Program-made: the position numbers and the translations under genes | Shown: piece after piece, positions 279 through 64,000 of the stretch | Layout: each line of letters opens with the position of its first letter | How positions within the stretch are numbered: position 1 is the stretch's first letter | Notes under the pieces: model-generated | What the model saw: the letters and a program-made list of their open reading frames with translations, nothing else | Told to the model about the DNA's origin: nothing | Database searches by the model: none | Assembly (NCBI RefSeq): GCF_947568905.1 | Contig: NC_079165.1 | Span: 4,030,001-4,094,000 of the forward strand | Reading direction: 5' to 3' | Origin: Ostrea edulis | Taxonomy: Eukaryota | DNA length: 64,000 nucleotides

Positions 279-2962
279 CCAATGCAGGAACAGAGGTGGA
301 CACTTGAGGTAAATGTCCAATTAACTGCAACAGGCAAACCATGAAGGATAGGAACAGAGACATTCCAAAGGAAATTTTCTCCCCAGCTTCACTAGGAATC
401 ACGTAGGAGATGAGAACTAGGACAGCGAGCATGGTTGTGGGCACCACATATAGAATAATGAGATAGAGAGGCTTCCTTCGAAGGCAGAAAAACACCTCCT
501 GATAACCGTAGGATGTATTTCTCAGTTTGATGTCTACTAAATCCCAGGTAGGGTTACCTTCCTGTTCTTTGTCTATTTTTACGGAGGTGATTTCTATGAA
601 GACATCTAAGTTGGAGTACATCTGGGAACCCACTTTGAAGGCACAAAGTTGATAATCAAACGGGAAGTAGGCGGGATTTGTGCTACAGTGGGTGGTCAAC
701 AGACCTAAAAACAACGTACTGACCGATCCATTGGACTGAACTTGGACACGACTAAAATCAACTCCTTGATTAGCCTCCATTCTGAAATATAAAGGAGGAA
801 GCCATTGTCAATATTGTTAACAGATACTATAACAGATCTGAGATCAGAATGCCTTGCGTCTCCTACATGTAGATCTGCCAGGACTGTATATACAGGTGTG
901 ATATGTTCACGTTTTGTAAGATTAAACACATCTCCTACATCTGCCAAGACTTTTCAAACAGGTGTGAGGTTAAAAGACCATTGAGCTCTAAAGTTTTTAC
1001 CTACATGATGCTTTGGAAAAAGAAAAACAAGCTGCATGCTTATATCAGTTACATAAAATGAGATTCTTTCGATTAACCGATGTACAGGTCCATTGCACAA
1101 ACTCAAAAGCTACATTTTGGACATTACGTATTGGTATTTAAGATTACAAATTTTGAATAAATCAATGAAGAAATGATAAGATTTCAAACAAATTACGAAT
1201 CGTTTGGAGGAGAATCTTAGATTACTTGTCCCAATTAATTATACTAATAGGAAAATCCACTGACGCAAAGAAATGTACCTCTACTTTAGGATATCTTGTG
1301 AGTTTGTTTGTTAAACACCATACGATAAGTTGTCACTCATAAAGAAACATGATCCTATGGAATTACTTAATTAGATCATTACAATGTCATTCAGTGAAAA
1401 TTCCTCCAAGCATTTTATTTGGATTAATTGACCATAACTTGAAAAAATTCAACCCCCATTCTGCACAAATTGATGTTAAGTTTCCTGAGAAGCAAATCAA
1501 TTAGTACTACATTTACGAAATAGATATGATGATAATGAATATTAAAAAAATCTCTGCGATTTTTTCTCAATTAAATTGAATACCTCCCAAAAATTGTGAC
1601 ATCAGGGGTCCAAAGAAATGATGGGTCGATAACAAAACTGTCTATGCCCTCATAATGACTAGCATTCCACGTCAAAAATTCGTCATTCCAGTTCTGAAAA
1701 GGATATTCAACTCTCTGTTACAAAGTGTTAATAATGAATCTAATCATCGTCCTGATTCCTATTTAATCAAGAAGTGTGATATAATCAGAAATATTTTCGT
1801 CTAATTTACATGAGTTGTTTACACTGTAAACCAACTTTTAGTCGCGAAGACTTTATTTCGCGATTTACCAGTGATAATCTGATTCGCTGCGACTAATTTT
1901 CGCGACTGAAATAATCTTAAACAAATACAGGAGATATTAAAGGACTGGTTCGCGGCAAAAAATGTTTGTGCCTATGAGGTTCTCGCTAACCTCACAAAAA
2001 AATTCACACTTGAATGAAAGTTAGTACACTGTATACTTACCAAATGGAGGTAACACGCTTGAGAAAAGGAACTTTCTCTTTCTTTCTGAAAAAGAAAAAC
2101 AGAGGGAACTATAGTTTAATTCATAGTTAAAATTGTGATACGGGAGATATCTTCTAAATAATAAATCCCTTAGTATATTTGTACAATAACAGATGTTCAT
2201 ATCAACTATATTATCTTTTTTATTACTTAAATGGAATGGATATCAGAGTCAAGAAGACCAAGCTGAAGTCAATAACAGGTTATTGCCCATCTAGATCTGC
2301 TGTTCAAAATTTTAAAAAAGATATGCACCTCATTCGAATGTAAAAGATTTTAGATGATAAAAAGAATTCTCTGAAGAAAAAAATCTACCTTGGTCTCGGG
2401 GTTAATGTTCCTGTAGTCCAAACAATGATGTATTCATAACATTCATTTACATTAATATTGTATTTTTATGCACATGATCCTATTAAAACTTAATTGATGA
2501 CTGCTTCTTAACATTAGTAGAAAACTCAAGTGCAAGAATAATACATCAACCCTAATCCCTGTGTCTCTCTTATGAGATACATCTTAAATGCATAATTATA
2601 TCGTTTTTTGATATGTGAAATGGAATAGCAAAAACAGATATCTTTTTGAAATGTACAAAAAATACGTACTAAACTGATGACGTACACGCTGGTCAGTTTA
2701 ATCCGCACGTTCACGATGTGGGAGGCATTGATTCGTGGCCGAACAAACTTATCATACACAGCAGGGTCCAACAGACTCCGCCTCAGATCGACTTCATTCA
2801 GAGACAGAATGGAAGGAATGCCTTCAAACGAAGACAATGTTTTCAAAATTTACAGAAATATCTTTTTCAATATTTACCGTGAAGATTTAATTGCTCCTTT
2901 TAAAGTTACAGCATACGTAAATACTACTCACCCAAAGAAATCATCAGGAGGTTAAAATTCAT
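279..2962 (-). CDS. Divergent nAChR-like Cys-loop ligand-gated ion channel subunit, copy A (3'-partial)
   Basis: Exons read by hand with GT-AG and consistent phases: 2962-2932 (MNFNLLMISLG), 2821-2670, 2085-2041 (45 nt, KERESSFSQACYLHL), 1693-1584 (110 nt, NWNDEFLTW..WTPDV), 781-279. Cys-loop CSTNPAYFPFDYQLC, M1, PSEAGEK, M2. The M3-M4 exon lies beyond the window start. Confidence 0.92.
1824..2031. mobile_element. Second copy of the CTGTAAACCAACT MITE, in an intron of copy A
   Basis: Same terminal motif as 24-219; degenerate right end. Confidence 0.4.
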
Positions 2963-3514
2963 TCTCAGAATATTTGATTCTTGTCACGTCCTGGAATCAC
3001 TTATAAATGATCAATTTGAACTATAGCATGAAACGTAGTAGGCATCCGTGCAAATAACATATTATCATCATTCTAATGATCGAGAAACTACGAAAGCCGA
3101 TTCGTATCAAAGGAAATAATTTACATTACTTGAACTAAAACTTGATTATTACATCAAAATTATCTCATTTCGAGTTCATTACTTCGTTATTACGTATGCA
3201 TAAAATATCTCGTAATTGAGAGCCGATATTCTCATTATCACAGTAAAAGATCTCGTTTAGATATTATTGATATAAAGAAAGAACATTTGTATTCAATTGC
3301 ATGCAATTTTGTCTTTCTCAAACATTTAAAAGAAATCACACAGCCCTTGTATATTTCATCACGCATTCTCTCATATCTAAGTATGCAATGAACATATATC
3401 CTATAAAAGAAAGGTTTCTATCTTTTATATCACATGACATAGTTATTCATCGGATGAGTATTTAATTCGTTTGCTTGTTATAAAAACAACAATCATGACA
3501 GCATGGTGTCCAGC

Positions 3515-3685
3515 ATCAGCTCTCAACGGGTGTGACCAGTGAACAGGGGATTCTTACTCATTCACTCCTCTTAGACACCTGATCCCACCTCAGGTATATC
3601 CAGGGATCCGTATTTGCCCAACTCTTAATTTTTATAACATGGGAATTAAATGGTTGATCACTCTTCGTTATCTTCACCTTTTCAT
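3515..3685 (+). mobile_element. Penelope-like element 3' fragment
   Basis: Matches the 3' end of the RT-bearing copy at 27535-29380 (GGTGTGACC..GGCACCTGATCCCACC..TTATCTTCACCTTT). Confidence 0.75.
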
Positions 3686-4256: not shown

Positions 4257-4625
4257 CTGTGAAGATAATCGATCACATAACTCTTATAAGGAATACCAAA
4301 AGGAGAGTTAGGCAAACACGGACCCCTGGGTATATCAGAGATGGGATCAGGTGCCTAGGAGGAGTAAGCAACCCAATTTGACCGGTCACACCCGCCGTGA
4401 ACACTATCTTGATCAGGTAAACAGAGTTATCCGTAGTCAAAATCAGTGTGTCAAGAACGGTCTAACAATCGGTATGAAACACATCAACCAGCATTTGACC
4501 CAATGATAGCATGTATTGGCAAACTAGATCATTATAACGACCATTGAATTTGCGAATTGCTGACTTGAAACGAGACTGTTGAAACCCCTGTAACATCAAC
4601 TTGTCTGTCAGTAGCCTTGGTGTAA
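4257..4625 (-). mobile_element. Penelope-like element 3' fragment
   Basis: Reverse complement of the same family tail plus the RT C-terminal coding region. Confidence 0.8.
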
Positions 4626-6270: not shown

Positions 6271-6275
6271 GCTTC

Positions 6276-9899: not shown

Positions 9900-12800
9900 T
9901 TACATAGAAACAATTGTCTTTGGTTTGACAGCACGTCCAGAGCGTGTGATGTAGCAACCTTGACTAGAGTCATTTTTTGATTTAAGGGGACTGTTAATGT
10001 CAGACTTTTCAACCTCTAAATTTTCATGATCGTGATTGTTTGTGACCATGGGACTAGAATTTTGATTGTCCAAAACATTGGGAAAGGACTCAAACATAGA
10101 TACCTGGCTCAAGTCTGGTTCATTTGTCTTAAGCAAATGACGACGATTTCTCGTGTATTGCGCGCCATCAGCAGTGCGGACAGTGTATGACCTAGTGTTG
10201 TGTTTGTCAACAACAACTGCTGGTTTCCAAGATTTATTCTCGCCTTGGATTCTCACCGTTTCATTAAGAACCAGTGGTTTCAAAGGTTTTGCTTTTACAT
10301 CATAGTGATTTTTCTGTTCTAGACGAGATGACCTCATTAGACTCTTGATCTTTGGCAAATTTGGGGTTTCTGGGACCAGTTGAACAGGTAAACAAGGAAT
10401 AACAGATCTGAGTTTTTTACTCATTAAGACTTGGGAAGGGGAACAACCAGTATCTGACAACGGGGTTGTGCGATATTCTAAAACTGCTAATAGAGGGTCG
10501 GTACCACTCTTTCGCGTTTTCTTAAGGAGTCGCTTGACCGTTTGCACAGTTCGCTCGGCGAGACCGTTAGACTGTGGGTACCTAGGACTTGATGTTATGT
10601 GATCAAAGTTCCACTTCTTACTGAAGTCTTCAAATTCGTACGATGAGTATTGAGGACCATTGTCCGATACGACCTTTTCCGGGATACCGAATCGTGCAAA
10701 TATGGATTTTAGCTCATTGATAATCATGCTGCTGCTCGTGCTTCGAAGTTTCGTGTACTCAAAATATCTACTCAAATAATCAACTACCACGAGGTAGTCC
10801 TGACCTTCAAACGCGAACAAATCGGTTGCCACTATTTGCCAGGGATAATCAGGTATTTCATGACTGATTAAAGGTTCTTTTTGGTTTGACCTTCGAGACT
10901 CTAAGCATATCTTGCAGCTAGAAACAAGGTTCTGTATGTCACTTGACATTTTCGGCCAGAACATAATATCCCTTGCGCGGCTTAGACATTTATCGATGCC
11001 CATGTGGCCTGCATGGATTTTTTCGAGCATTTCAGTTCTGAGTGATTTCGGCATAACGATTTTGTTCCCTTTCAGAATCAATCCCGAAACGAACGACAAC
11101 TCGTCGCGATGGTTCCAATACTCGACAACACAAGGAGAACATTCCTTTCGCGATTCAGGCCAACCATTCAGAATTATCTCAGCTAATGTAGAAAGTTGCT
11201 CGTCACGACATGTAGCGGATCTTATCGCCTCTAATTTTCGTTCACTAATCGGTAGTGAAGATAAGACTGAATGTACCTGAAGGTCTAATCCTTCCGAAAT
11301 ATGTGGATAAGTATCCGGAAGAAACTTACGGGACAAAGTGTCAGCCACGGGTATGCTCTTTCCGGGCAAATGGTACAAGTCTATATCATATCTTTGAAGT
11401 TGCAATAGCATGCGCTGAAGCCTAGGAGGAGCCGCGCTGATCGGCTTCTTTACTATGCTTACAAGTGGTTTGTGATCGGTTTCGACTCGTACGGAGTGTC
11501 CGTAAACGTATTGGTGAAAATGTTTACAACCAAATAAGATGGCCAACATTTCCTTCTCAATTTGAGCGTAGTTCACTTCTGTGGAAGTGAGTGACTTCGA
11601 CGCGAATGCTATCGGTCTCTTATCTTGCATTAATGTAGCCCCTAAACCAAATTTAGAAGCGTCAACTTGCAAAGTGACTTCCTTGCCAGGGTCATAGTAT
11701 GCGAGTACTCGTCCTGGGCATTGAGTGATGACCTTTTTGACCTCATTGAATGCTCTTTCCTGGGGGTGGTCCCAAGAGAACTGCACATCTTTGTTCAACA
11801 GTTTTCGCATCGGACTGGTGATTTCCGAGAGGTTCGGCGCAAACTTTGCGAGATAATTGACCATCCCGAGTATTGTTTCAAGTTCAGCCTTGTTTTGCGG
11901 GGGTTTCATGTTACTGACGGCATTGACCTTTAACGGATCAGGCTTAAGACCTTGCGACGATATGACGTGTCCAAAATAGGACAGTTCTGTGACCCCGACC
12001 TCTAGTTTATCCTCGTTAAATCGGATGCCCTTGTCGCGTGCTCTTGCGAGAACGGATCTAAGGTTCTGATCGTGTTCTGCCCTAGAACTACCAAATACCA
12101 AGATGTCATCGACTATGGCTACGACACCGCTCAGACCTTCAAAGCACTCATCGATTTTCCTTTGGAACTCATCTTGCGATGATTTAAGTCCAAATGGGAG
12201 ACGGTGAAACCGGTAACGACCGAAAGGGGTGTTGAACGTTGTGAGGAAGGATGACTCCTCGTCCAACTTGAGAGCCCAGTAGCCAGACCGTGCATCTAGC
12301 TTAGTGAAAAATTTGGCTCCAGAGAGCTGCGGCAGGATATCGTCTAGGGTATGCATTGGGTAATGTGGACGCAAAATAGCCTTGTTCAAGTCTTGCGGAT
12401 CAAGACAGATGCGTAACTTACCGGAGCGCTTCTCGACTACCACAAGTGAGTTTACCCATTTCGTTGGTTCGGTGACCTTTGCAATTATAGATGCCTGCTC
12501 CATGCGTTCGAGCTCGGATTTCAATTTGTCGCGGATCGCGAATGGTACACGTCGTGGGGGGTGGACTACCGGTACGGCGTTCTGATCAATGTAGATCTTG
12601 ATTTCCCCTGGAAACAGTCCAATTCCTGAAAAAACATCTGAGTAACGTTTCAAAATTACTTCATTGTCTAATGAGCTAAATTGAGAGTGACCATCAGGTT
12701 CATGTTTGTGAACGCTTTTATCTGGACAGTGGACCTTGACATCACTGTCTGGGACTACTGTTTCAACAGAGTAGACTAATTTGATCAATTCAAAACTAAG

Positions 12801-13994
12801 ACATGACTGAAGACCTAAAATAGGGGGTCCTTCTGTATCGACAACATAGAACTCGAGGTTCTGTGACCTTTGACCTACTGTGCACGACAGACGACAAACA
12901 CCTAATGTGCGTAGTTGACCACCATCATAAGCTGACAGTTTACGCTGGGGACTACGAAGGATGTCAAGTGATTCTAGCTTATTGTAGACCTTTTCAGGCA
13001 ATATATTTGCTTGAGAACCAGTATCAAGTTTGAAATCTACAGGGAAGGATTTTGGACCGATATTTACCTTGGCAAAAGCCTGTTGATTTTTTATATGATC
13101 ATAATTTGACTCTATACTATCAATGTAGAAATCAGATTCAGTGTCAGACTCGGGGCATGCTGTAACTTCATGAACAGACTTTGATTTGTGCACAGAGCGA
13201 CACACTTTGGAGAAGTGATTCCACTTGTTACAGTTATCACAGCGTTTCCCCTTTGCTGGACAGACGTCAGCTTTTTTGTGAGTGTATCCACAGTTGCCAC
13301 ATGTAGAAGATCCTGAATTCTTCTGTTGGTTCTGCTGTTTGGATGAACGTCGATGATTGGAGTTACGGTTCTTGTATTTCGCATCACTTGGTTCCGAATT
13401 CGATCTGCTTCCTGTGCGAGACGGTTTGGACACTGCATGCACTTCGGCATTATGCGGCGACATCAAGCGTAATTGCTCTTGGGAGTATTCGTAACTCTGG
13501 CTAATTTCAATAGCTTTAACAAGTGTCAGTTTTTCTCCCTCATTTATGAGTCTCTCTCTCACCTTCGTAGATGACGTACCAAACACAATGCGGTCACGCA
13601 CCATCTCATCAGGGTCTCCGTAATTACAGTCTTGTACATGTAGTTTCAGACGTGTAACAAATTGTTCAGTAGTGTCACTGTTTTGAAGAATGTTATTGAA
13701 TTTGTACCTCGCAAAAACAGGGTTCAATTTGGGCTGGACATACGACTTGAATTTGTTAAAGTACACATTCAAAGTTTTTGCGTGCTCGGCTGAAAGTTCC
13801 GGCCAAGTGTTAAATACATCTCTGCCCTTGTCACCAACCCATAATAAGAGATACTTGCATTTTATTTCCTCGTCCTTGTCCTTTAAAGGCCCGTCGAAAA
13901 TAAGTTGCACATGTTGTTGAAATTTCTTCCACGCTTCTGGGAGATTGGTGCTATCCCAGTCCATTTTGGGCGTCGGAATGCCGGTCAAATCCAT
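9900..13994 (-). CDS. Gag-Pol polyprotein, 1364 aa
   Basis: Two zinc knuckles (CGNCGYTH..C, CDNCNKWNHFSKVC), protease LDTGS, RT (LDARSGYW, LPFGL, IVDD), RNase H (VDAS, EKE, TDHKPL, ADTLSR), integrase HHCC and DDE (TDLF, SDNGPQY, AER), in Gypsy order PR-RT-RH-IN. Confidence 0.97.
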   Translation of the reverse strand: MDLTGIPTPKMDWDSTNLPEAWKKFQQHVQLIFDGPLKDKDEEIKCKYLLLWVGDKGRDVFNTWPELSAEHAKTLNVYFNKFKSYVQPKLNPVFARYKFNNILQNSDTTEQFVTRLKLHVQDCNYGDPDEMVRDRIVFGTSSTKVRERLINEGEKLTLVKAIEISQSYEYSQEQLRLMSPHNAEVHAVSKPSRTGSRSNSEPSDAKYKNRNSNHRRSSKQQNQQKNSGSSTCGNCGYTHKKADVCPAKGKRCDNCNKWNHFSKVCRSVHKSKSVHEVTACPESDTESDFYIDSIESNYDHIKNQQAFAKVNIGPKSFPVDFKLDTGSQANILPEKVYNKLESLDILRSPQRKLSAYDGGQLRTLGVCRLSCTVGQRSQNLEFYVVDTEGPPILGLQSCLSFELIKLVYSVETVVPDSDVKVHCPDKSVHKHEPDGHSQFSSLDNEVILKRYSDVFSGIGLFPGEIKIYIDQNAVPVVHPPRRVPFAIRDKLKSELERMEQASIIAKVTEPTKWVNSLVVVEKRSGKLRICLDPQDLNKAILRPHYPMHTLDDILPQLSGAKFFTKLDARSGYWALKLDEESSFLTTFNTPFGRYRFHRLPFGLKSSQDEFQRKIDECFEGLSGVVAIVDDILVFGSSRAEHDQNLRSVLARARDKGIRFNEDKLEVGVTELSYFGHVISSQGLKPDPLKVNAVSNMKPPQNKAELETILGMVNYLAKFAPNLSEITSPMRKLLNKDVQFSWDHPQERAFNEVKKVITQCPGRVLAYYDPGKEVTLQVDASKFGLGATLMQDKRPIAFASKSLTSTEVNYAQIEKEMLAILFGCKHFHQYVYGHSVRVETDHKPLVSIVKKPISAAPPRLQRMLLQLQRYDIDLYHLPGKSIPVADTLSRKFLPDTYPHISEGLDLQVHSVLSSLPISERKLEAIRSATCRDEQLSTLAEIILNGWPESRKECSPCVVEYWNHRDELSFVSGLILKGNKIVMPKSLRTEMLEKIHAGHMGIDKCLSRARDIMFWPKMSSDIQNLVSSCKICLESRRSNQKEPLISHEIPDYPWQIVATDLFAFEGQDYLVVVDYLSRYFEYTKLRSTSSSMIINELKSIFARFGIPEKVVSDNGPQYSSYEFEDFSKKWNFDHITSSPRYPQSNGLAERTVQTVKRLLKKTRKSGTDPLLAVLEYRTTPLSDTGCSPSQVLMSKKLRSVIPCLPVQLVPETPNLPKIKSLMRSSRLEQKNHYDVKAKPLKPLVLNETVRIQGENKSWKPAVVVDKHNTRSYTVRTADGAQYTRNRRHLLKTNEPDLSQVSMFESFPNVLDNQNSSPMVTNNHDHENLEVEKSDINSPLKSKNDSSQGCYITRSGRAVKPKTIVSM

Positions 13995-14033
13995 TTTGAA
14001 GTGTTGACAGGATTCTCTCTGTAAATCTGGTTT

Positions 14034-14046
14034 ACTTCTGACACCA
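14034..14046 (-). other. Primer binding site TGGTGTCAGAAGT
   Basis: Directly follows the 5' LTR and is complementary to a tRNA-Leu type 3' end (ACUUCUGACACCA). Confidence 0.8.
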
Positions 14047-14224
14047 TGTAATAGTGTGCGCAGGGCTCATGCCATGAGCCTTATGGAGGAACAAAAACAA
14101 CGTGCTCCTAACTGTAATTTTTATTAATGACCAACATGTGTGGGTCCACACGGGGTCCCGGATATATACAAAACATGTAAGAGCGATAACTCTAAGTATG
14201 TACAATCACAAGTCAAATGTTACA
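14047..14224 (-). repeat. 5' LTR
   Basis: 178 bp, no difference from 9705-9882 seen by eye. Confidence 0.95.
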
Positions 14225-30800: not shown

Positions 30801-30843
<43 letters not shown>

Positions 30844-31073: not shown

Positions 31074-31115
<42 letters not shown>

Positions 31116-35574: not shown

Positions 35575-36148
35575 GATGCCCACAAGCTTGAATGTTTTTC
35601 ATTTCAAAAGCTCACACTCCAACTTTACCAATGATGTTCGTTGAAGGATATGACCAAATTTTTTTTTACCTCGTTCCTTAAACGTTGCTAAGGTGAATAA
35701 ATGCCATGTATGCATCAATTAATAATTGAGTCTTCGTAACATTAATCGATGATTTTTTTTATTAAGATAAGGAAATAAGAAGAATTTTTAAGAAGACCCA
35801 AGAGTCAAGGTGTGCCCCATCATGTATTCTATTGTCAGTCCCATATTACTGGAAAACCGCTATTGTTCTTGGCGACCATAGTGACCATAGATTCAAAATT
35901 AAGATCGATTTCGTGAATCGGATGACTAATTATCCATATTTCCATTACAAAGCCATTTGTTATATCAACATTATCGATGCATAAAGATGAAAAGTACGGA
36001 AAATTGTTTCCTAAATACTAATGAATGGAATTTAAAATCGTTATCCGGACTCGGGTTTGTGCAAACAATCTATCTTACGAAGGACACGTGATCCATCGAT
36101 GGAACAAAACACTTGGAAAATGAATTTATGTCATTCAGCATTTTCAGG

Positions 36149-43344: not shown

Positions 43345-43860
43345 CTTTATCGTCAACTTCCCATATTTATGTAGCAATATTCCATTATCACCTGTATATG
43401 GTGATTATGATACTCAACTGATTTGATACACAAGAACATGCTTGTGTATCAGATTTTGAATCGAGGAAGGTTACTGACAAACAAATTTATATTATATGGT
43501 TTTCGACAGTCTCGTGTAAAGTCAGCATTTTGCGAATTCTATGGTCGTTTTACCAAAACAAACTTCCATTGGGCCAAATGCTGTCTAACGTGTTTCATAC
43601 CCATTGTTATGCCGTTCTTTACGCACAGAATGTGACTACGGATTACACCGTATACCTAATCAAGATATAGGGCTCACAGAGGGCGTGACCGGTCGACAGG
43701 GGATGCTTACTTCTTTTAGGTACCTGATCCCACCTCTGGTAGGTCCAGCGGTCCGTGTTTGCCCTACTTTTAATTTCTTCTTCTTTTATAAGAATTATGA
43801 GATTGATCACTGTTCGTTATATCCACCTTTCATCAATATTCGTTATATTCACCTTTTCAT
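43345..43860 (+). mobile_element. Penelope-like element 3' fragment
   Basis: [15 protein letters not shown]-type RT C-terminus plus family tail. Confidence 0.8.
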
Positions 43861-48917: not shown

Positions 48918-49024
48918 TATCTTTCATCAATTATGCATTTAAAAAGTTAAGGTCATAAATGTGACGTAAAGATTCTTTTTGTCGTCTGCAACTCTGATTA
49001 TACATGCAAGGTATTGATTAGAAA

Positions 49025-49825
49025 ACATGGGTTAAACTCAGTAAGGGCTGCAAAGAAAACATCGTGACATTAGTCGAGGAAGTTAAAAGTTTCAGGGAAG
49101 TTGCAAAATTATTGAAAATTCCTATACCAACTGTGTATAGTGCTTGGAAAAAGGTTCGAGAGCGAGGTACAACAAAAACAACAACAACAACAAAGCATTG
49201 TACGAAATAAATTAGTAGATGAACGCACAGAACGGAGACTTGTTAGACACAGTCGGATAGAAAAAGACCACCGTCGGACGTTACAAGAAAACAGAATGAA
49301 AATAACGATGCAAAGTATTCCAAGAAAATTATTTGGCGATGTTTAAGACAAAATGGATACTTAATATGTCTTTGTATAAAGAAAATACGGTCAGAGTTGC
49401 CAATCGTGTGAAACGTTGGCAATGGTGTGCGGGTAAAAGAAACTGGACCGTGGAAAATGAATGGAAAAAGGTACTTTTTCTAATGAGTGTCAGATTGACG
49501 TTGAAAATGACTACCAAGTATGGAGAGTGATGAATCTTGACTACCGGACTGTAACACCCCCACCCCACCCCACCCCCCGCCGAAACTGGTAAAATATTTG
49601 GGGGTGCATTACATGTCTTATGTTGGTACTCTTTGTAGAGTAAATGTCAACATTAATTCTGAAAAATATATAGATAACTTGTAGCCTGTTGTAGCAAAAC
49701 TTTTTCAAGATGACAATCATCTGTAACTTATGGATGACAACTGCACCTGTTCATCGATCTTGTCTTTCAACAGATTACAAAATTGGCAACCAAATTCCAG
49801 CACTGAAGTGGCCCACACGATGACC
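49025..49825 (+). pseudogene. Highly degraded Tc1-like transposase
   Basis: HTH-like SFREVAKLLKIPIPTVYSAWKK, then WTVENEWKKVLF, WGCI, DDN and KWP fragments across frameshifts. Confidence 0.65.
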
Positions 49826-50061
49826 TCTCTAGAATTTTTTCACCCATATGGAAACGTGACCATTGTAGATGAAGGGCTGCAAAATTAAGGCCTATGCTCG
49901 GCGCTTACGGCCTTTGGGCAGGAGGGGTCTTTATCGTGCCACACCTGCTGTGACACGGGACCTCGGTTTTTGCGGTCTCATTTGGCGGTCCGCCCCATTC
50001 AATCACCTCTTACGACAAGTAAGGGATACTGAGGACGTATTTTAACCCAGATCCCCACGGG
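49824..50061 (-). mobile_element. SINE, non-tRNA head variant
   Basis: Ends exactly at CCCGTGGGGATC on the minus strand. Confidence 0.75.
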
Positions 50062-51070: not shown

Positions 51071-54000
51071 ATGTGTTGCCACATGCTCCTGATTTTATTG
51101 GGTGAGTAGTTTACATGTATATTTCAGACCTATTTCACACCACAATTCTGTAACTTCACAAATCGTTCAAGCTTGCTGTTTGTCAGTAAGATTACTTAAA
51201 TCTACGACAAAAGTTGTATTCCTACCTTGTCTTTAAAGGGGTTAATTATGTCTTGTCCCTCAATGAAGTTGATCTGAAGCGGATGCTTTTCTCCCCTGCT
51301 GTGTATGATAAGTCTGTCCGACCACGCATTAACGCCACTCACACTGTAGAAGTAGGGGTTGGTTTTACCAACGTGTTTGTAGTCGACTTAGTAAGTACAC
51401 ATTTTCTAATCTTGCAACAGGAAGTATTGTACATTCCGAATGTATACGAACTTGAAACTCTTTGAATGAAACTACTCATATAAACTTCTTTGACATTTGG
51501 ACAAATCAGTCCATGAGTTGATTTTATTTTATAAACGTAAATGATTATCATTTCAGGATGAAAAGGGAAGTTCCCTCTCTCAAGCATGTTTCTTATATGT
51601 GGTAGGTGAAGATACACTTAATTAGTTATATGTTAATTATATGTGGTAGGTGAAGACACATTTAATTAGTTACATGTTACTTATATTTGATAAGTGAAGA
51701 CACGCTTAATTAGTTACATGTTACTTATATAAGGTAAGTGAAGACACACATAATTAATTACATGTTTATTAAATGTGGTGGATGGAGACCCACTTAATTA
51801 GTTAAGAATGCTTTATTTCAAATGATTAACTTGATCTTTGCACTAACTAAAAGAGATTAATTTAATTGATGATAAAATAGATTCATAACGGTCATATAAA
51901 GCTGTGTCGATAAATTTCAGGGGTGGAAGGACGAATTTTTGACATGGAATGCCAGTCATTACGAGGGTATAGAGAGTTTTGTTGTCGACATATCATCCAT
52001 ATGGTATCCAGATGTGTCAATTCTAGGAAGGTATTTAATTATAGTGTAAATTGAAAACTATTCGTTATAGTGGTTTGTTTATTGGCCATAAACTATGAAA
52101 ACCATTATCATATCTTGATTGTATTACCATTTGTCGACACTGTCTTTAGTTGTAGTATCTCTCTCATCCGCTCACGTTCTGTAAGCTACGGTACGTAGTA
52201 ATTGATTTTATAAAGAATTACATCGGTGTAACTGTTTTGTGCTCTTTAAACAAATTAGGTCATTTAATCAAACCAACGGATTGATTAATTTATCAATCGA
52301 ATTGATCAAGCAGTTGATTGAACGGAACTTGTTGACCGTTTTATTGGTATTATTTTACTGATAATTCACTATTTCTTGTTATGTGATGGAGAACCGTGTC
52401 GTTAAAATATTCTAATTTGCAAATATAACTGATCAAAGGGCGAATGTTGTCTCATGTGTCTCGTTAACAGCTGTCAAAATAGATTTTGACTATGGATTAC
52501 TTCGTTTACCTGATCAGGATATAAGGTTCACAACGAGTGTGACCGGTCGATAGGAATGTGTACTCCTCCTTGACACCCGACCCCACCTCAGGTGTACAGG
52601 AATCCTCGTTTGTCTTCTTAATTTTGTATTCTTCATAGGATTTAGGACATTGACCACTCTTTATTATCTTCACTTTTTCATTCCGGTGACTTCCTCGTTT
52701 TGTTCTAGTAAATATGCTGGTTGCCACTCGGTCTCCACCATGTGGTAGGTTTGTGATACCATGTTTTACTTGTTTTTTTCCTGCTTTGAAATACTGGTGG
52801 TTTCATAGTATTTTCCCTGTGAATCGGTCCTGTGGAATGTTGGTTGTCTCCTGCTTTTTGTATTGGTGAATCTGTCCCTTCCTATACTGGTGGCTGTTTG
52901 ATTTTGTGCTAGTGATTCATTCTGCGATGTACTGATGTTCTCTTTGTTTTGTGCTAGTAAATCGGCCATGTGGGATATTAGAGTTCTAGTTTCGTGCTCC
53001 TGAATTCATTCTATGATATACTGGAGATTGCCTCATTTCATGCTTGTAAAGCTATCCTGTAAAATTCATTGGGTTTTACTTTTCAAGTTTTTTCTTTAAT
53101 CTTTTAAATTTAAACAGTATATTATTATGTATAACATAATTAGATAAGGCACCAGACAGAACCCATATAAGCCCTCTCATTAAAGGCGCAAGGTACATGT
53201 AATGTCCACATAATTATAAACTGAAAGATTACATATATGATAATCCTTAGACGAATTTGACTTCACTTTTTGGCACACTGTTTCCCCCTATAATAGCTGT
53301 AAAACTTCATTGTTATATCGGATTTCAAACATTTCGGCTGAGTATCACTGAAGAGACATTATTTGTCGAAATGCGCATCTGGTGCATCAAAATTGGTACC
53401 GTATAAGTTTTACATAATATCTCAATATATATGAAGTAAAAAGATAATATAACATGCAAAGTGCAATGAAAATACAAATGTAATCACTGTATATAAATAA
53501 TCCACTAATAAAAACAAAACAAAAAATGGAAAAGAAAGAAAACAATGAGGTGGTGCTTAATGGAAAGTAAGAAAGAGAGTCAAAGGAAAACAAATCAAAT
53601 TGAGAAAAAGAAGGAAGAAATAAACACAAAAAGGGGGAAAAAGTAAGGGGTACCGATTCAACAGGAGAAGGTAAATCTGTCCTGTGAAATTCCTGGGCTT
53701 TTTTATTTTTATTATTGCTTATAACATTCTGCGTATAGTCAGTTTTTAAATCAAGGTAAGCTACTGACAAACAAGTTGATGGTACAGGGGTTTAACAGTC
53801 TCGATTGAAGTCAGCATTTCGCAAATTCTATGGTCGATATAACGATCTAGTTCGTCAATAAAACCTATCATTGGGTCAAATGTTGTCTGACGTGTTTCAT
53901 ATCGATTGTTAAGCCGTTCTTGAGACACTGATTTTGGCTGCAGATAACTCCGTTTACCTGAACGGGATATAGGGCTCACGGCGGGTGTGACCGGTCGACA

Positions 54001-56528
54001 GGGGATGTTTACTCCTTCTAGGCACCTGATCCCACTTCTGGTGTGTCCAGGGGTCCGTGTTTGCCCAACTATCTATTTTGTATTGCTTGTAGGAGTTATG
54101 AGATTGATCACTGTTCGTTATCTTCACCTTTCATTGCCCTGTAGAGTACTGGTTGCTTGTTGCGTTTTTGTGCCGGAGAATTAGTCTTCTAGAATGCTGG
54201 TAGTTGGCTGGTTTGTGTTTTTGTGCCGGAGAATTAGTCTTCTAGAATGCTGGTAGTTGGCTGCTTTGCGTTCTTGAGTCGCTGGTGTGATAAGTTTGTG
54301 ATTTTCCAGTTTTGTGTTGCTGAATTTATCCTGTAATGTACTGTCGATTTCCTAGTTTTATGCAATGAATTATCATCTGCCTGTACTTTCATATTGGCTT
54401 ATGATTTTAAAATATTATAGTTAGAGTATAAAAATATATCTTTGAGTAACAAATTGTCGTTATTTTCATTGCATCCACTTTCTGTTACATTGGAAAATAC
54501 GAATCATTAAGTTGAATTGTATCCATGGATATTCACGTCATACATTATAAATATACCATGATAATCCAGACCCTCAGAGTTTTTGGACAGTGAGTCTTTT
54601 TATGTTTGAATTACAACCTTTCTATGTATCTTAAATTTTTCAGAATGGAGATTGATCAAGAAGTGAAGTTTAATCGAGCACGAGTACAGTCCAATGGTAT
54701 GGTCAACACCACATTTGTAGGACCGCTGACAACCCATTGCAGCACAGATCCCTCCCACTTCCCGTTCGATTATCAGCTTTGTGAATTCAGGCTGGATTCT
54801 CAAATCTATACTAAATCCGAAGTTAAAATGAAGTTCACCTTCACAAACATGATGGAAAACTACAAATCAAATCCAAATTGGAACACAGCGTACATTAACT
54901 TTGTTGCTGATCAGCAACTCTATTTCTGTCTTCAAAGGAAATCGCTGTATTTAAGCATGCTCTATATGGTGCCAACTACAATGCATGCCGTATTGATTCT
55001 CGTTTCTTTCATAGTTCCTAGCGAAGCTGGGGAGAAAATATCATTCGGAATGTCTCTGTTTCTATCCTTTATGGTTTTACTGTTACAGTTAAATGGAGAT
55101 TTACCGGAAGTATCGACCTCCATTCCAGCGTTAGGTAGGTAGGTGTGGGACCTGCGTTAGGAGGATATGGCTGGGGCCAGCAGTACTTAACTGTTTTCAG
55201 GATTATTAGGTTGAAGTTTGTCTTTGTCAGTTTTCAGTTTATTAGTGTTATGTAATCGAGTTATAATCTCCATTTAAATTACAGTCTTCAATGTACTTCA
55301 CTACATTACGACGGCTAATACTTATCAGATATAAGGATATTCTTTAAAAATACGAGAGTTAATGGATTTTGTAGTATTGATTGATTGAATATTGTTTTAC
55401 GTCCCTCTCGAGAATATTTTACTCATATGCACTGCCGGTGAAGGGCTGCAAAATTTCGGTCTATGCTCGACGCTTTTGGCCATTGAGCAGGGAGGTATCT
55501 TTATCGTGTCACACCTGCTGTGACACGGGACCTCGGTTTTTGCGGTCTCATCCGAAGGACCACCCCATTTAGTCTCCTCTTACGACAAGTAAAGGGGTAC
55601 TGAGGACCTATTCTAACCCGGATCCCCACGGGATTGTCTCATCCAAAGGACCGCACCATTTAGTCGCCTCTTACGACAAGCAAGGGGGTACTGAGGACCT
55701 ATTCTAACCCGGATCCTCACGGGATGTTGTATTAGACACAAATTTTAGAATGGCATAATTTGAAAGGAATATGCAAAAAATTTCCTGTAAATAACAAATA
55801 TACAGATGGAAGTCGACTTTATGGATGTTTCATTAGACAGTTTTTTCTGGTTTGAATAGATTCTCAGTACCCCTTGCTTGTCTAGATGAGACCGTAATGG
55901 CTGAGACACTGTGTCACAGCAGGTGGGGCACGATAAAGAGCCCTCCATGCTTAAAGGCCGTCAGCGCAGAGTATAGCCTAAAATTTTCAGCGCTTCACCG
56001 ACAAGGGTGACATCTCCATATGAGTGAAAAATTCTCTCAAGAGACGTTAAACAATAATAAATTAATGAATCTCATCTGTAATTGATAACCGGTACAATTT
56101 TCTTGAGACGTATAATTATTGTCAAGAGGGAAGTACAGAAAATTTAACAATTTACTATAATAAAAGATCAACCGTTATATCATCTATATTGTTATGTGCA
56201 ATATTTTACAGAGATCTACGTTTTGCTTCACATGGTGAGTGGGGTCGTTTCCTTGGTTGTCTCCTCTTTCACAGCTTACGTCAAGCAGACCAGAGACCAA
56301 TTAAAATATCGAACTGAGACAAAAGTGAAGGACGTATCGTCCCTCGTTCCCAACAACAAATGCAAACCTAACAATAAAAGAAGAACGAACATCTGTGAAC
56401 GCCTCAGATCCGAGATATTCCTCAACCGGCTGGGATTTGCCGTGTCGTTCATTCTTATTCTAGCAGCAAACTGTGTAATGTTAAATGCCAAATTTGTCTC
56501 AACAAGCTGTGGCCATTTTCTATTGTAA
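51071..56528 (+). CDS. Divergent nAChR-like Cys-loop channel subunit, copy C, 381 aa
   Basis: Exons 51071-51101, 51239-51390, 51557-51601, 51921-52030, 54644-55134, 56212-56528 (1146 nt, open frame). Signal peptide MCCHMLLILLGVNYVLS, Cys-loop CSTDPSHFPFDYQLC, GEK and M1-M4. Confidence 0.95.
51585..51805 (+). repeat. 44-bp tandem repeat spanning the exon 3 donor of copy C, five units
   Basis: Donor-equivalent positions at 51602, 51646, 51690 (mutated), 51734 and 51778. Confidence 0.85.
53342..53385 (+). ncRNA. Minimal type-I hammerhead ribozyme in intron 4 of copy C, within a repeat of about 170 bp (53245-53415)
   Basis: GUAUCA-CUGAAGA-GAC(AUUAUUU)GUC-GAAA-UGCGCA-UC-UGGUGC: full core, stem I 6 bp with two G.U pairs, palindromic stem III, predicted cleavage after 53379. 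Confidence 0.85.
53735..54134 (+). mobile_element. Penelope-like element 3' fragment
   Basis: RT C-terminus plus tail. Further copies at about 8115-8200, 31145-31192, 39040-39200, 52470-52680, 56930-57180, 57340-57450, 60510-60640 and 60900-61150. Confidence 0.8.
55377..55723 (-). mobile_element. SINE, non-tRNA head variant, with a tandemly duplicated head
   Basis: The head ends at 55632 and again at 55723. Confidence 0.8.
55849..56068 (+). mobile_element. SINE copy inverted relative to 55377-55723
   Basis: Same core and tail, with an internal deletion in the head. Confidence 0.7.
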
Positions 56529-58419: not shown

Positions 58420-58870
58420 TTGTCTCCTGCATATGGTGTTTATATATCTCAACTGATTCGCAGGAGATTGTTCTGCTTATGGTCAGTTTTTAAATCGCGG
58501 CAAGCTACTGACGAACAAGTTGGTGGTACAGGAGTCTCGATTGAAGTCAGCATTTCGCAAATTCTATGGCCGTTATAACGATCTAGTTTGCCAATAAAAC
58601 CTATCATTGGGTCATATGCTGTCTCTGATGTGTTTCATTCCGATTGTTAGACCGTTCTTGGCACACTGATTCTGACGACGGATAACTCCGTTTACCCTAT
58701 CAAGATATAGGGCCCACGGCGGGTGTGACCGGTCGATAGGAGATGCTTATTCCTCCAAGGCACCTGATTCCACCTCTGGTGTGTCCAGGAGTCCGTGTTT
58801 CCCCAACTATCTATTTTTTATCGCTTATAGAAGTTATGAGATCGATCACTGTTCGTTATCTTCACCTTCC
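58420..58870 (+). mobile_element. Penelope-like element 3' fragment
   Basis: RT C-terminus plus tail. Confidence 0.8.
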
Positions 58871-59674
58871 ACACACAGAAATATATTTTGCAGCAGATAT
58901 AATTTTCCATTCAACACTAGTTGTAATTATGAATTAGTAGTTTGTAATTACAAAATATCGATTTTCGATTACAAATTATTGATTTGAAATTTACAAATTG
59001 TTGACTTGATATTTGTAATTGAATTTAAAATCACTCATCAGATTTTTTGTGTGATTTTGTGTTTAATCAAATATCTAAAGAAAGCTGATATTTTTCGCAT
59101 TGAAAATGAAAATGTCAAACAAGGATAATTCTGTCGTTAAGATGTGTGCATTACAATATTCGCCCAGACACAGTATTGGACACCAATCCAATGCAAAATA
59201 ATTCAAAAGCAATATTTGTTTCCATTTCCAATACAAGCTGATGTAGAGGATTTCATATCCTATCCCTGTACCGCTTTATCAATCCCTGTTCTTTCTGCGT
59301 CTGAAAATACCAACCGCCCACAACTAGCAACAAGTAAAATGTATCAACCTCATCGTATGTCAGGCGATGCAACACACGGCGATCCCCCCCCCCCCCCCTC
59401 ATTGGTTTAGTTTTAGTTTAGCATGCATGCACATTATGAAAATCAACAATGTCACTAACTATGACAGAGAAATACATTATTGTACTGATGACTATGAACA
59501 TATCTTACTGTTACCGGATCCCAAAGTATCATTATAACATTAACAAATGGGAGTGTCAAACATATGCTATATGCGAATGTTGAAATATTTAATCAAAGAT
59601 AAGAATTTCATATGATGAAATATAATCTCCTCTATCAAAATATGCTATATTTCACCGCGATTCTTTTAATTGAA

Positions 59675-60100
59675 TGAAAGGTGAAGATAAGGGTGATCAA
59701 TCTCATAACTCCTACAAGCAATACAAAATAGATAGTTGGGCAAACACGGACACCTGGATACACCAGAGGTGGGAGCAGGTGCCTAGGAGGAGTAATCATC
59801 CCCTGTCGACCGGTCACACCCACCGTGAGCCCTATATCCTGAGCAAGTGAACGGAGTTATCCGCAGTCAAAATAAGTGTGCCAAGAACTGCCTAACAATC
59901 GGTATGAAATATGTCAGACAACATTTGACCCAATGATAGGTTGTATTGACGAACTACATCGTTATATCGACCATAGAATTTGTGACATGTTGACTTCAAT
60001 CGAGACTGTTGAAACCCATGTACCATCAACTTGTTTGTCAGTAGCTTGCCTCGATTCAAAAACTGACTATACGTAGAACAAGCTCTTGCAATACCAACTT
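59675..60100 (-). mobile_element. Penelope-like element 3' fragment
   Basis: ORF 59892-60212 ends ..[41 protein letters not shown]. Confidence 0.8.
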
Positions 60101-61349
60101 CAGAGTGATTGTGTATAGAATCAGAGCAGTGTTTAGAAAGTAATTTATTTTGGATTAATGATATCAATATTCCCATCATAATTTTTAAAGAAGCAGCTGT
60201 CCATGATGTCAAAGTCGGACCTTTAAGTTAAAACTGCTTTTCCTTACCAAACATTGAATTGCTTGCAGTTAACTCGAACTTAGAAAAGGGATGTTGATTA
60301 AATTAGTAGTAACTAAGGAACATTATTGTAAAGGTGTCTTTCATGATTTACCTCTATCATGAATTCAAACAATTACCAGCAGTTACAAGTGTATAGATAA
60401 CTTATTCATAGATACATCAATATTTTTACTTAAACATTTGACATTGTATGGTGTGGAAAATATTTCAGGTAAAATTAGCAATAACAGCAATGTTTATCAT
60501 TCATTACGACAAAAGGAAATGTAAAGATAACGAGATGCGATCAATCTGATAAATCCTATAGAGATACAACGTTGAGAATATGGCAAATATGGACCCTTGA
60601 ACATAACAGAGGTGGGATCAGGTGCCTGGGATAAATAATCTTCCCCTGTTGACAAGGGTGTAGAGGAGAAACGATTGAAGCAAATTGAGATAGGACATTC
60701 GGATAGAGGACCAATATTTCCACTCAAATGAATTACTTGACTCCAGTGATCGAACGTCCATCTGTTCGACTTTTCGGTGATCGTCATCGAGGACAATAAG
60801 TTCGATTCAAAGCAATGTAGTTTACCCTTTGGATTATAGACACTATTGAATAACTATTTATACAATATTTCAATATCATCTCAGTAGTATTTATAAAAAT
60901 GTGAAGATAACGAACACTGATCAATCTCATCATTCCTATAAACAATACAAAATTAAGAAGAAGGCAAACATGGAACCCTTGGACACACCAGAGGTGGGAT
61001 CAGGTGCCTACGAGTAGTAAGCATTTGTTTACCGGTTACACCCGCCGTGAGCTCTGTATAAAATAAACTGAATAATCTGTAACCAAAATTAGTATGTACA
61101 TAATTTGTAAGAAAAATTAAGACACGTCAGACAATATTTGACCCAATAACAATTTCTTAATCCGTTCTTTATTCATTAAAAAGTTCCCCTTCCATATGTT
61201 GCGTCGAAAAATGGATTTTTTGTGATGGTGTAGGTCAATGAGGTAACGAAATTAAGATACATTACAGATATTTTACATGACTCTTCTTAAGAACGTATAA
61301 CACATTAAGTATTGATAATGTATGACAGTTCTCTAGTTATTAACACAGA

Positions 61350-61389
<40 letters not shown>

Positions 61390-61553: not shown

Positions 61554-62898
61554 TTACAATAGAAAATGGCCACAGCTTGTTGAGACAAATTTGGCGTTTA
61601 GCATTACACAGTTTGCTGCTAGAATAAGAATAAGCGACACGACAAATCCCAGTCGGTTGAGGAATATCCCGGATCTGAGTCGTTCACAGATGCCCTTCCA
61701 TCTTTTATTGTTGACCCTGTCTTTGCTGTTGGAAACGATGGAGGGTACGTCCTTCACATTTGTCTCATTTCGATGTTTTGATTGATCGCTGTTCTGTTTA
61801 AAATAAACAGTGAAGGAGGAGACAACCAGGGAAACGACCCCACTCACCAAGTGAAGCATAACGTAGATCTCTGTAAAATATTGTAGAACATGCAGTTGAT
61901 ATAGTAATGTATATTTTACCCTAGAAAGCAGTGATGACTTTTTTTCACTGTCCTCTTGAGTATATAGATGTAAATCTTAAGCAAACTGTAGTGTTTAACA
62001 ATTACAGATGATAAAATAACTGTCTTATGAAACATTGATAAAGTCAACTTCCATTTGTATATTTATATTATTTACAGAAAATCTGTGTTAACCACACAAG
62101 CAATTAACTCTCGTAGTGCGAAAGAATATCCTTATCTCTGATAATTATCACCCGTCGTAATGTAACGATGTAAATCGAAGACAGTAATGACCTTCATTTT
62201 GCAGTTACTGCCCTTACACCGGAAGTAGGGGCGTGCTTACCGATGAGGTCCTAAGCTTCAGATAAAATAGCAGTGACAAATAGGGTATAGTAAAGCTTAC
62301 AGTATCAAAATCTTTATTATGAGCGGGGTTTTTACAGGTTGTATCATATTTCTTATAATTACAAAGTTTAGTTTATTCGATTTTACGAAGAACACTTTTT
62401 TTAAATACACTATACATTTCATTAAACCCAAAGGATGGGAAGGGGGAGAAGTATAGCAGATCTATATCCAGTATTTGGTGCTTAATTCTGTCCAAGAAAT
62501 AGTACTATTAATACCAAAACTTTCATGAGTAATTAAGCAGCCCAGACACCTGGGAACAAAAGCACGATGAAACCATATGATAATATAAATATAATCGCGT
62601 ATGTCACATTGTTTTCAAAAAGGGGGGAGGCATGATGGCCTTCACAATTGTATGAAAATTCTTGACAAGCAAAAACAAACAAATGTAACAAAACCCAAAC
62701 CCCCCAAATCCTACATTGTGGAAAAAAGGGGGAAGTCCTGAAATTCAATTAATTGGTTCCTTAAATTTTATAGTTTAATTATAATTCAATACTACTATAT
62801 AAAAAGGGGTAACCTATATATCAAACTTTGTTAAAATAACCAACTTAGCATGTAATGACAACAGATAAAGTACATTTTCTGTAAAATAGGACAGCCCC

Positions 62899-62946
<48 letters not shown>

Positions 62947-64000
62947 CTATGTGCTTGATGGTTTTTTGTGTGTACCTTTGGTTAAGTTGATTTACACAAA
63001 CGTTAATTTTCAAAAGATTGAATCACTCGCGTACGTTAGAAAACAGAGTTCAACAGAAAAATTACATTAGAGATACAGATTTGGTATACTTAATATGTTC
63101 CGTTCATTGCAGCGACACCAGATGTACATATTTTTGTTAATTATTGCATGCGTTGGTTGTACATGTAATTTCTGGCATATTCAGTGTGGTTTTCTGGTCA
63201 TCTATAATATAATTGATAAAAAGTAATAATGAGGAATTGCTCACCCTGATTATTCTGATCTAAACTGAGATGCCGTGGACTGCGGAAAAATCACTTATGG
63301 GACACATAAATATAATAAATGACTAAGAATTTTGTACTGTCATATTATTTGTCAGTAATTACATTTAATTTCTACGAAATTTCCTTAACTGCATGGAACT
63401 TAATTCTAATGAGAAATAGTAAATTATCTATTCCTTATAATCACGCAATCACTTGAGGACCCCTTCGTGTTGTGTGCCCCTGTATTCAGGGGGGGGGGGA
63501 TAACTTGTGCAGCACTGTGAACAATGCATTCCATTCTAATTGAGATTATAACTCGATTGCATAACACTAATAAACTGAAAACTCAAACTTCAATCTAATA
63601 ATCATGAAAACAGTTAAATAATGCTGATCCCAGTCATACCCACTTTACGCAGGTCCCTGATCTACCTACCTAATGCTGGAATGGAGGTAGACACCTCAGG
63701 TAAATCTCCATTTAACTGTAACAGCAAAACCATAAAGGATAGGAACAGAGACATTCCGAATGATATTTTCTCCCCGGATTCGCTGGGAACTAAGAAAGAA
63801 ACGAGAATCAGAACAGCATGCATTGTAGTTGGCACCATATAGAGCATGCTTAAATACAGTGATTTCCTTTGAAGACAGAGAGTTGCTGATCATCAACAAA
63901 GTTAATATACGCCCTGTTCCAATTTGGATTTGATTTGTAGTTTTGTATCATGTTTGCGGAGGTGAATTTCATGTCAACCTCAGATTTAGTATAAATTTGA
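61554..64000 (-). pseudogene. Divergent nAChR-like channel subunit, copy D, frameshifted and 5'-partial
   Basis: Exons >64000-63670 and 61870-61554 with intact splice sites. A 4-nt deletion relative to copy C at about 63879 (CAGCAACTC[TATT]TCTGTCTTC) gives a TAA at 63852-63850, before M1. Confidence 0.85.

Follow-up and report, generated by a model that had tools for sequence, protein, structure and literature searches.

An Intron-Retaining Tandem Cluster of Nicotinic-Type Cys-Loop Receptor Subunits Lacking Acetylcholine-Site Residues in the Oyster Ostrea edulis

The oyster Ostrea edulis carries on chromosome OX387705.1 a tandem cluster of eight loci encoding cationic Cys-loop subunits of nicotinic acetylcholine receptor (nAChR) type, which retain their introns and are restricted to the Ostreidae, an identification that can be made with high confidence. 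Four of these genes (copies A to D) lie in the window analysed here, a stretch of 64,000 nucleotides at 4.03–4.09 Mb, where window position x equals record position 4,030,000 + x (exact matches). The best overall explanation for this cluster, with about even prospects of being right, is that it encodes orphan nAChR-type channels not gated by acetylcholine (ACh). Its mechanistic part, namely that the subunits form cation channels opened by a non-ACh stimulus, is a tentative proposal whose chances are slightly poorer than even.

Nicotinic-Type Channel Architecture

A six-frame motif search of the whole window located the pore motif in four places. In all four copies it follows the pattern PSE(A/S)GEK-ISFGMSLFLSFMV, copy D having PSESGEK. 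The pore is of the cation type, with Glu at position -1' (GEK), no Pro insertion at -2', Leu at 9' and Val at 13', and the oyster channels would be expected to select cations. The Cys-loop has the C-x13-C form, with invariant C145 and C159 enclosing FPFDYQ, and the signal peptide, the pre-M1 Arg and the M2–M3 Pro are also retained. The Pfam profiles Neur_chan_LBD and Neur_chan_memb match with E-values of approximately 1e-32 and 1e-14, respectively, which places the receptor identity far beyond chance; over eight members, the E-values run from 1e-27 to 1e-35 and from 1e-8 to 1e-14. Across three genera, 20 of the 28 positions of the M1–M2 linker and M2 are invariant; M2 is nearly invariant within the family and differs from that of the alpha-type relatives.

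The AlphaFold2 (AF2) monomer model of copy C (pLDDT 90.1, pTM 0.81) shows a beta-sandwich followed by the helices M1–M4. Its best fold matches are the beta1 chains of muscle and Torpedo receptors (Z 29, root-mean-square deviation 2.2 Å over 338 residues, 26% identity), alpha7 (Z 28.6) and 5-HT3A (Z 27). The best PDB sequence matches are Torpedo/muscle beta (6UWZ chain C, 9GU1 chain B; E 2e-29) and the octopus chemotactile receptor CRT1 (8EIS/9E6B; 4e-29), followed by beta4, gamma, alpha7, alpha4 and 5-HT3A; the beta, CRT1 and alpha7 matches span E 1e-24 to 1e-29. CRT1 and the ZAC channel were not among the 50 best structural matches of the copy C model, and ZAC was not among the 60 best PDB sequence matches. 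The Cys-loop and pore described in an earlier note on this DNA were found at defined coordinates, and its assignment of the genes to cationic pentameric ligand-gated ion channel subunits of the nAChR type is upheld by the GEK pore, the nAChR-type introns and the beta1 and alpha7 matches.

The proteins of this family are compact, with approximately 380 residues and an M3–M4 loop of approximately 43 (38–44 across the family), shorter than the 55 or so residues given in the earlier note. The only conserved stretch of this fast-evolving loop is K-V-(K/N/T/R)-D-(V/E)-S (residues ~312–318 of copy C), present in all members, with V315 invariant and D317 nearly so; this motif of the intracellular domain (ICD) may be a trafficking or phosphorylation site. 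In addition, two extra cysteines, C208 and C376 in copy C (54929-54931 and 56508-56510), are invariant in all 11 family members and at all eight O. edulis loci. C208 lies on beta10, three residues ahead of the pre-M1 Arg, and C376 lies in the short tail after M4, making them candidates for a disulfide that would tie the C-terminus of M4 to the extracellular domain (ECD).

Loss of the Acetylcholine-Binding Site

The binding-site positions were compared in an alignment with 59 of the nearest full-length relatives, nine of which carry YxCC. Loop B, which is GSW-x-Y in the alpha-type relatives, reads (G/D/A)S(Q/E/D)-x-Y in the family, and its Trp is Gln in copies A (GSQMY, 630-616, minus strand), B (DSQIY, 39665-39679, plus strand) and C (54795-54809, plus strand). 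Loop A, which is LYNN in the alpha-type relatives, is (L/F/Y)G(R/K) in the family, with Tyr replaced by Phe in A and by Leu in B and C. The vicinal Cys-Cys of YxCC is absent from 11 of 11 family members and from 8 of 8 O. edulis loci, and the tyrosines of loop C are deleted. The losses that the earlier note had reported at loops A, B and C thus hold against the alpha-type relatives. Its further statement that the aromatic residue of loop D remains is correct for A, B and C (Tyr, Tyr, Phe), but not for the wider family, where the position equivalent to the Trp is variable (Y/I/N/Y/F/Y/S/H in the eight O. edulis copies; F/Y/I/N/R/T/S/H in the wider family).

Loop C is also drastically reduced, being 9–17 residues shorter than in the YxCC alpha-type relatives. 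The segment bounded by the loop F Trp and the pre-M1 Arg measures 20–24 residues in the family, compared to 27–28 in typical non-alpha relatives and 33–37 in alpha types, and in the AF2 model of copy C, beta9 (192–200) and beta10 (204–211) are linked by just three residues. All the principal-face determinants of canonical ACh binding are therefore missing, and, judging from the residues at these positions, canonical ACh binding should be impossible on either face of the subunits.

Gene Models and Organization of the Cluster

Exon models were obtained by paralogue-to-paralogue blastn and splice-site inspection, and all introns have GT-AG borders. Of the four nAChR-like genes of the window, B and C are complete, A is short of its last exon, and D is cut and frameshifted. 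Every copy has five introns, and the plan of 31/152/45/110 nt proposed in the earlier note for the first exons is common to A, C and one of the models of B.

Copy A lies on the minus strand (279..2962), with exons 1–5 at 2932-2962, 2670-2821, 2041-2085, 1584-1693 and 279-781 (31/152/45/110/503 nt, AG/GT borders) and its pore at 396-337. Its last exon (M3–M4) was found in the adjoining genomic DNA, 167–477 nt before window position 1. The gene is intact in the genome, with a product of 383 residues that equals RefSeq P0154 ('neuronal acetylcholine receptor subunit beta-4-like'); the 280 residues encoded inside the window match the N-terminal part of P0154 exactly. Copy B (plus strand, 382 residues) comprises six exons at 36149-36179, 36307-36458, 38182-38226, 38354-38463, 39514-40010 and 40322-40635 (GT-AG), with the Cys-loop at 39608-39652, the beta9–loop C–beta10 region at 39740-39817 and PSEAGEK-M2 at 39893-39952. 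Its RefSeq isoforms P0155 and P0161 have different 5' ends. Isoform X1 uses an in-frame upstream ATG (36128-36179) and an exon 2 acceptor located 12 nt further 5' (36295-36306), so that its first exons measure 52/164 instead of 31/152 nt and its leader 28 instead of 17 residues. Another isoform, X3, omits parts of exons 2 and 5. Copy C (plus strand, 381 residues) comprises exons at 51071-51101, 51239-51390, 51557-51601, 51921-52030, 54644-55134 and 56212-56528 (GT-AG), with the Cys-loop at 54738-54782, the loop C region at 54870-54941 and the pore at 55017-55076, and its model is identical to RefSeq P0156 ('acetylcholine receptor subunit beta-like').

The window holds only the 3' part of copy D, on the minus strand: the end of exon 5 (63670-64000), with the pore (PSESGEK) at ~63790-63728, and the last exon (61554-61870). 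Exons 1–4 lie past the window end, and exons 2–4 are intact in the adjoining DNA of the same record. Nucleotide alignment and split tblastn high-scoring segment pairs reveal a 4-nt deletion with respect to B and C at 63880/63879 (minus strand), and the resulting frameshift falls immediately ahead of M1. No other lesion was seen, and the frames on both sides stay open. A full-length protein is not recovered for this copy in RefSeq, where the called product has only 133 residues. Copy D is probably a pseudogene or the result of an assembly error.

Two of the exons are of characteristic size. The 45-nt exon (DEKGSSLSQACYLFV in B), which holds the loop D position, lies at 38182-38226 (plus) in B, 2041-2085 (minus) in A and 51557-51601 (plus) in C, and was found in all eight O. 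edulis copies and in Magallana gigas. The 110-nt exon, running from W-x-P-D to loop A, lies at 38354-38463 (plus) in B, 1584-1693 (minus) in A and 51921-52030 (plus) in C. In the nAChR genes of vertebrates, exons of 45 and 110 nt are the typical sizes. All of these vertebrate genes inherited the first three introns from their common ancestor (PMC6354393).

The cluster extends past the window to eight loci in approximately 123 kb, broken up by an SLC6 gene, a Ty3/gypsy element and Tc1/mariner remnants, and seven of the eight loci have open frames. The P0157 and P0159 loci lie below the window start and two further copies (E and F) above its end. P0159 has a 17-residue insert between exons 2 and 3 that is found in no other copy. 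Several database models merge neighbouring copies: RefSeq P0173 (673 residues; record 4,102,346-4,125,302) is a fusion of copy E, without its own last exon, and copy F, and the 2012 Crassostrea gigas gene model (UniProt K1QW88 / OYG10009701) joins two tandem copies.

Distribution, Phylogeny and Relation to Cephalopod Receptors

The family appears to be restricted to the Ostreidae. Word-indexed searches, run both with a member and with the profile of the family, returned only Ostrea, Magallana/Crassostrea and Saccostrea proteins, followed by a drop to 24% identity. A HMMER scan of copy C exon 5 against 1.84 billion cluster representatives yielded 2951 relatives, of which only two had E<1e-30, the remainder being approximately 30% identical. 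The intron-retaining tandem bivalve family of the earlier note is thus recovered, with a range narrower still than the one it proposed. Eight copies are present in O. edulis, two in tandem in M. gigas and one was found in Saccostrea, no second copy being present within 10 kb of the S. cucullata locus. The M. gigas and S. cucullata loci both adjoin a TPR-repeat gene.

In the maximum-likelihood tree, the family is monophyletic (100/100), with a stem of 0.91 substitutions per site, and all the YxCC rows lie across a 100/100 branch from it. A single clade of all the O. edulis copies receives supports of just 59–86. Synonymous distances are approximately 0.15–1.15 for most O. edulis pairs, 1.54 between A and the first M. 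gigas copy (Mg1), and saturated between C and Mg1. Since most O. edulis pairs are synonymously closer to each other than to the Magallana copies, duplication within the Ostrea lineage is favoured.

The sisters of the family (100/99) are the Saccostrea gene P0018 and the Mytilus coruscus gene P0132. These proteins (P0018/P0165 of S. cucullata and P0132, named 'CHRNA7') have in common with the family the missing loop B Trp, a short loop C (24–25 residues) and a Cys after M4. P0018 also shares the 45/110/large/last exon plan, and the Saccostrea sister gene has both extra cysteines (the equivalents of C208 and C376). However, these proteins are just 27–28% identical to the family and have longer ICDs of their own (55–74 residues), and the P0132 model is without the pre-M1 Cys and the segment of the 45-nt exon. 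More broadly, the oyster family belongs to the large lophotrochozoan expansion of orphan nAChR-like genes. C. gigas has 132 nAChR genes, 33 of them of the alpha type, 13 of which have a complete principal site (Jiao et al. 2019, PMC6896357). Most of the expanded bivalve nAChRs are intronless or have one to two introns, in contrast to the intron-rich family described here.

Cephalopod chemotactile receptors (CRs) and the oyster family are both clustered lineage-specific expansions. CRT1 is likewise derived from nAChRs, is without the aromatic box or the Cys pair, and shares with the family a compact size (approximately 380–410 residues for the two), a short ICD and a shortened loop C; its alignment to the family is full-length, including M4. 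However, CRs are reported as intronless retrogenes (PMC13174522), while the oyster genes have kept five introns at nAChR positions. Over exon 5, CRT1 is no closer to the family than nAChR beta or alpha7, and no CR was found among the 150 nearest cluster representatives. Since the 45/110-nt exon plan is retained both in the family and in its sisters, and CRs are described as intronless, the family would not descend from the CR retrogene lineage, and an origin independent of the cephalopod CRs is supported only indirectly.

Selection and Expression

The genes of the family are under purifying selection. Pairwise dN/dS is 0.21–0.24 among A, B and C, 0.29 between D and C, and 0.21–0.31 among the paralogues overall. 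By region (omega from pairwise Nei-Gojobori estimates on the eight O. edulis copies), the transmembrane domain (TMD) shows values of 0.10–0.18 for the majority of pairs (reaching 0.38 in the two closest), the non-pocket ECD 0.14–0.32, the pocket loops 0.13–0.59 and the ICD 0.2–1.2. Summed over four independent pairs, pN/pS is 0.44 for the pocket loops, 0.28 for the other ECD and 0.25 for the TMD, and among the tandem paralogues no ECD segments vary more than loops E, F and C. Constraint on the pocket is thus looser, yet it does not evolve neutrally, and positive selection on it is not demonstrable. Diversifying selection on the pocket loops was considered and rejected, omega lying at 0.3–0.6 and never exceeding 1 and their excess in pN/pS being non-significant.

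Full-length intron-free transcripts of the Magallana orthologues were found in six RNA-seq assemblies; a search for papers mentioning the corresponding run accessions found none. The fused C. gigas model OYG10009701 (Jiao et al. 2019) contains two Cys-loops that are exactly those of the M. gigas pair. Its reads per kilobase per million (RPKM) are approximately 0 until the early D-larva, 1.5–2.7 in D-larvae, 0.5–1.9 from umbo through pediveliger, 0.86 in spat and 0.21 in juveniles, and it is missing from the table of genes above RPKM 1 in mantle, digestive gland, gill, adductor, haemocytes, labial palp and gonads. Bulk RNA-seq of M. gigas suggests that the orthologues are active in a small number of cells in the shelled larva, from D-veliger to pediveliger, rather than in adult organs. 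The expression check suggested in the earlier note therefore finds Magallana orthologues transcribed, weakly, in larvae, and below RPKM 1 in the mantle, gill and labial palp.

Possible Modes of Gating

If these subunits form non-ACh-gated channels, they would build cation channels, either by themselves or together with their own paralogues, and a stimulus other than ACh would act at an open, cap-less intersubunit cleft, whose lining would consist of the invariant loop B Gln/Glu/Asp-x-Tyr together with fast-evolving, paralogue-specific residues of loops D, E and F. The signal would then reach the pore via the conserved Cys-loop and M2–M3 coupling. The orphan nACh-like channel Alpo4 from Alvinella offers a precedent for an ACh-insensitive nAChR-like channel, although, unlike the oyster family, it has retained the crucial aromatic residues together with a long loop C (PMC10338036), and ZAC offers another, with a very short loop C (PMC11536092). 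Cephalopod CRs are a further precedent for ACh-insensitive channels derived from nAChRs. Several observations weigh against this proposal. The nearest solved structures are the muscle beta1 chains, a purely structural subunit, and in the PDB alignment beta1 is also without the loop A Tyr, the loop B Trp and the loop D Trp. The excess of pN/pS in the pocket over the other ECD is not significant (Fisher p=0.14), and a faster-changing pocket could reflect relaxed constraint on a site no longer in use just as well as diversification of the ligands. Moreover, expression is very low (RPKM of 2.7 at most) and comes from a fused model in another genus, and no transcripts encoding exactly O. edulis A or C were found in the assemblies searched, where only the genome record matched.

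The same structural resemblance underlies the view that these proteins are accessory (structural) subunits, occupying the non-binding position or positions of ACh-gated heteromers formed with oyster alpha-type subunits and tuning conductance, trafficking or desensitisation, as vertebrate beta1 does. This view, the main rival of the preceding proposal, appears somewhat unlikely, despite the muscle/Torpedo beta1 chains topping both the sequence and the fold matches. Beta1 is a cationic GEK-type pore subunit without the vicinal Cys pair, its loops A, B and D are degenerate in a similar manner, and RefSeq names the oyster proteins beta-like, unc-29-like or lev-1-like. The loss of the conserved ACh contacts on both the principal and the complementary faces is also what would be expected of a non-binding position, and the pore and coupling elements are strongly conserved. 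However, beta1 is a conserved single-copy orthologue with an obligate alpha1 partner, a full-length loop C and a long M3–M4 domain, in contrast to the three-residue loop C turn, the short M3–M4 loop, and the lineage-restricted, tandemly expanded nature of the oyster family. Confinement to one bivalve family with one to eight copies would be unusual for an obligatory structural partner, loop C is much shorter than in beta1 and typical non-alpha relatives, the near-invariant M2 has a sequence of its own, distinct from that of the alpha-type relatives, and the binding loops are still constrained (pN/pS 0.44). That the genes are non-functional leftovers of the bivalve nAChR expansion, now decaying, is disfavoured and highly improbable: the frameshift of copy D and the very low expression of the orthologue would fit it, but seven of the eight O. 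edulis loci have open frames, correctly spliced transcripts exist, and dN/dS stays at 0.2–0.3, with a near-invariant pore, across genera diverged to synonymous saturation.

The specific proposal of the earlier note, a special case of non-ACh gating, would be that of chemosensory receptors for environmental, non-cholinergic cues, convergent with cephalopod CRs, a quite unlikely reading that draws entirely on analogy and on the variability of the pocket among paralogues. The tandem paralogues differ most at pocket positions (loop D; loops E, F and C), their compact size, short ICD and short loop C are as in CRT1, larval expression up to the pediveliger is compatible with the sensing of settlement cues, and a role of divergent nAChR clades of molluscs in ionotropic chemosensation has been suggested as possible in a preprint (PMC13174522). 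Conversely, the M. gigas orthologue stays below RPKM 1 in the mantle, gill and labial palp, expression peaks in D-larvae instead of competent pediveligers, a signal of positive selection is absent, and one to eight genes is a small number beside known chemoreceptor repertoires. Spelled out in full, this would make the proteins oyster-specific larval ionotropic chemoreceptors, arisen from an intron-bearing nAChR gene independently of CRs, with an open, loop-C-less pocket diversified for external cues such as settlement signals and a C208–C376 tether, a scenario that is likewise improbable. Even less probable, and indeed very unlikely, is a ZAC-like mode, in which Zn2+, Cu2+ or H+ would gate the channels at acidic or polar residues of the cap-less cleft or of the Cys-loop, or in which they would be constitutively active. 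ZAC is a chordate gene. It is also a compact cationic Cys-loop channel, the ZACN cluster ranked first in a protein-language-model feature search (0.97), and the oyster proteins carry Gln, Glu or Asp in place of the loop B Trp. The loop C of ZAC is likewise very short and poorly conserved, in a protein of compact size (PMC11536092). However, the clusters ranked second and third (molluscan and arthropod nAChR-like) score 0.96, so the lead of ZAC is not discriminating; its absence from the best sequence and structural matches was noted above, its sequence and fold kinship to the family being no closer than that of nAChRs, and a conserved His/Cys/Asp cluster suggestive of a metal site was not seen in the family alignment. 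Neither PDB sequence nor fold ranks back a kinship with ZAC, which is kept as an architectural analogy only.

Neighbouring Gene, Repeats and Assembly Gap

Between copies A and B lies a multi-exon gene of the SLC6/SNF sodium:neurotransmitter symporter type (~22022 to ~32959, plus strand), recognised by matches to profile PF00209. It contains the N gap of the window (25790-25928), which truncates one of its exons at the 3' end ('...KGIKS|NNN'), the following exon opening with 'VVYFTA...'. The nearest receptor exons are those of B, at 10 kb, and A, at 23 kb. Since the gap lies in an unrelated gene, at least 10 kb from any receptor exon, it has no bearing on the four receptor models, and it was ruled out as a source of error in them. 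A TA-rich microsatellite, seen in translation, occupies 30803-31113, in an SLC6 intron.

Between A and the SLC6 gene there is a Ty3/gypsy-type gag-pol open reading frame (9903-14066, minus strand) of 1388 unbroken codons, encoding protease, reverse transcriptase, RNase H and integrase, which looks like a recently active long terminal repeat retrotransposon. Frame-broken remnants of Tc1/mariner transposases (DDE_3; Sleeping-Beauty-type helix-turn-helix) are found at 36754-37842 (plus), within intron 2 of copy B, and at 49022-50042 (plus), approximately 1 kb upstream of copy C. The introns and spacers of the cluster also hold, on both strands, at least 12 occurrences of a dispersed repeat of approximately 150–400 nt with copies 70–90% identical (for example at 4268-4391, 35424-35575, 39041-39165, 43449-43833, 53985-54136, 58723-58871, 59673-59819 and 60897-61024), whose translations share a recurring 20-residue string. 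It is probably an element resembling short interspersed nuclear elements or miniature inverted-repeat transposable elements.

Novelty and Significance

The earlier note claimed more novelty than is warranted. RefSeq already contains the genes, the set of Jiao et al. 2019 includes the M. gigas pair (as OYG10009701), and both the bivalve expansion of orphan nicotinic-like receptors and the loss of the ACh site in most bivalve nAChRs are already known, as is the idea that divergent bivalve ligand-binding domains bind other ligands (PMC6896357). A 2026 preprint further reports clades from molluscs in which binding residues are substituted, as well as a CR-like clade with bivalve members (PMC13174522). 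What is new is the delimitation of an Ostreidae-only, intron-retaining, loop-C-less subfamily, together with the map of the eight O. edulis loci, the selection profile, the larval expression and the invariant extra Cys pair.

For now, the chief outcome is one more well-delimited subfamily within the bivalve nAChR expansion already on record; several gene models that were fused or partial are corrected, and the search for function is directed to shelled larvae over the adult mantle, gill and palps. If gating by a stimulus other than ACh is true, the family would represent a second independent case, after the cephalopod CRs, of a molluscan transmitter receptor turned to another ligand, and a Cys-loop receptor could work with loop C essentially deleted, its small size and short intracellular loop being convenient for structural work.

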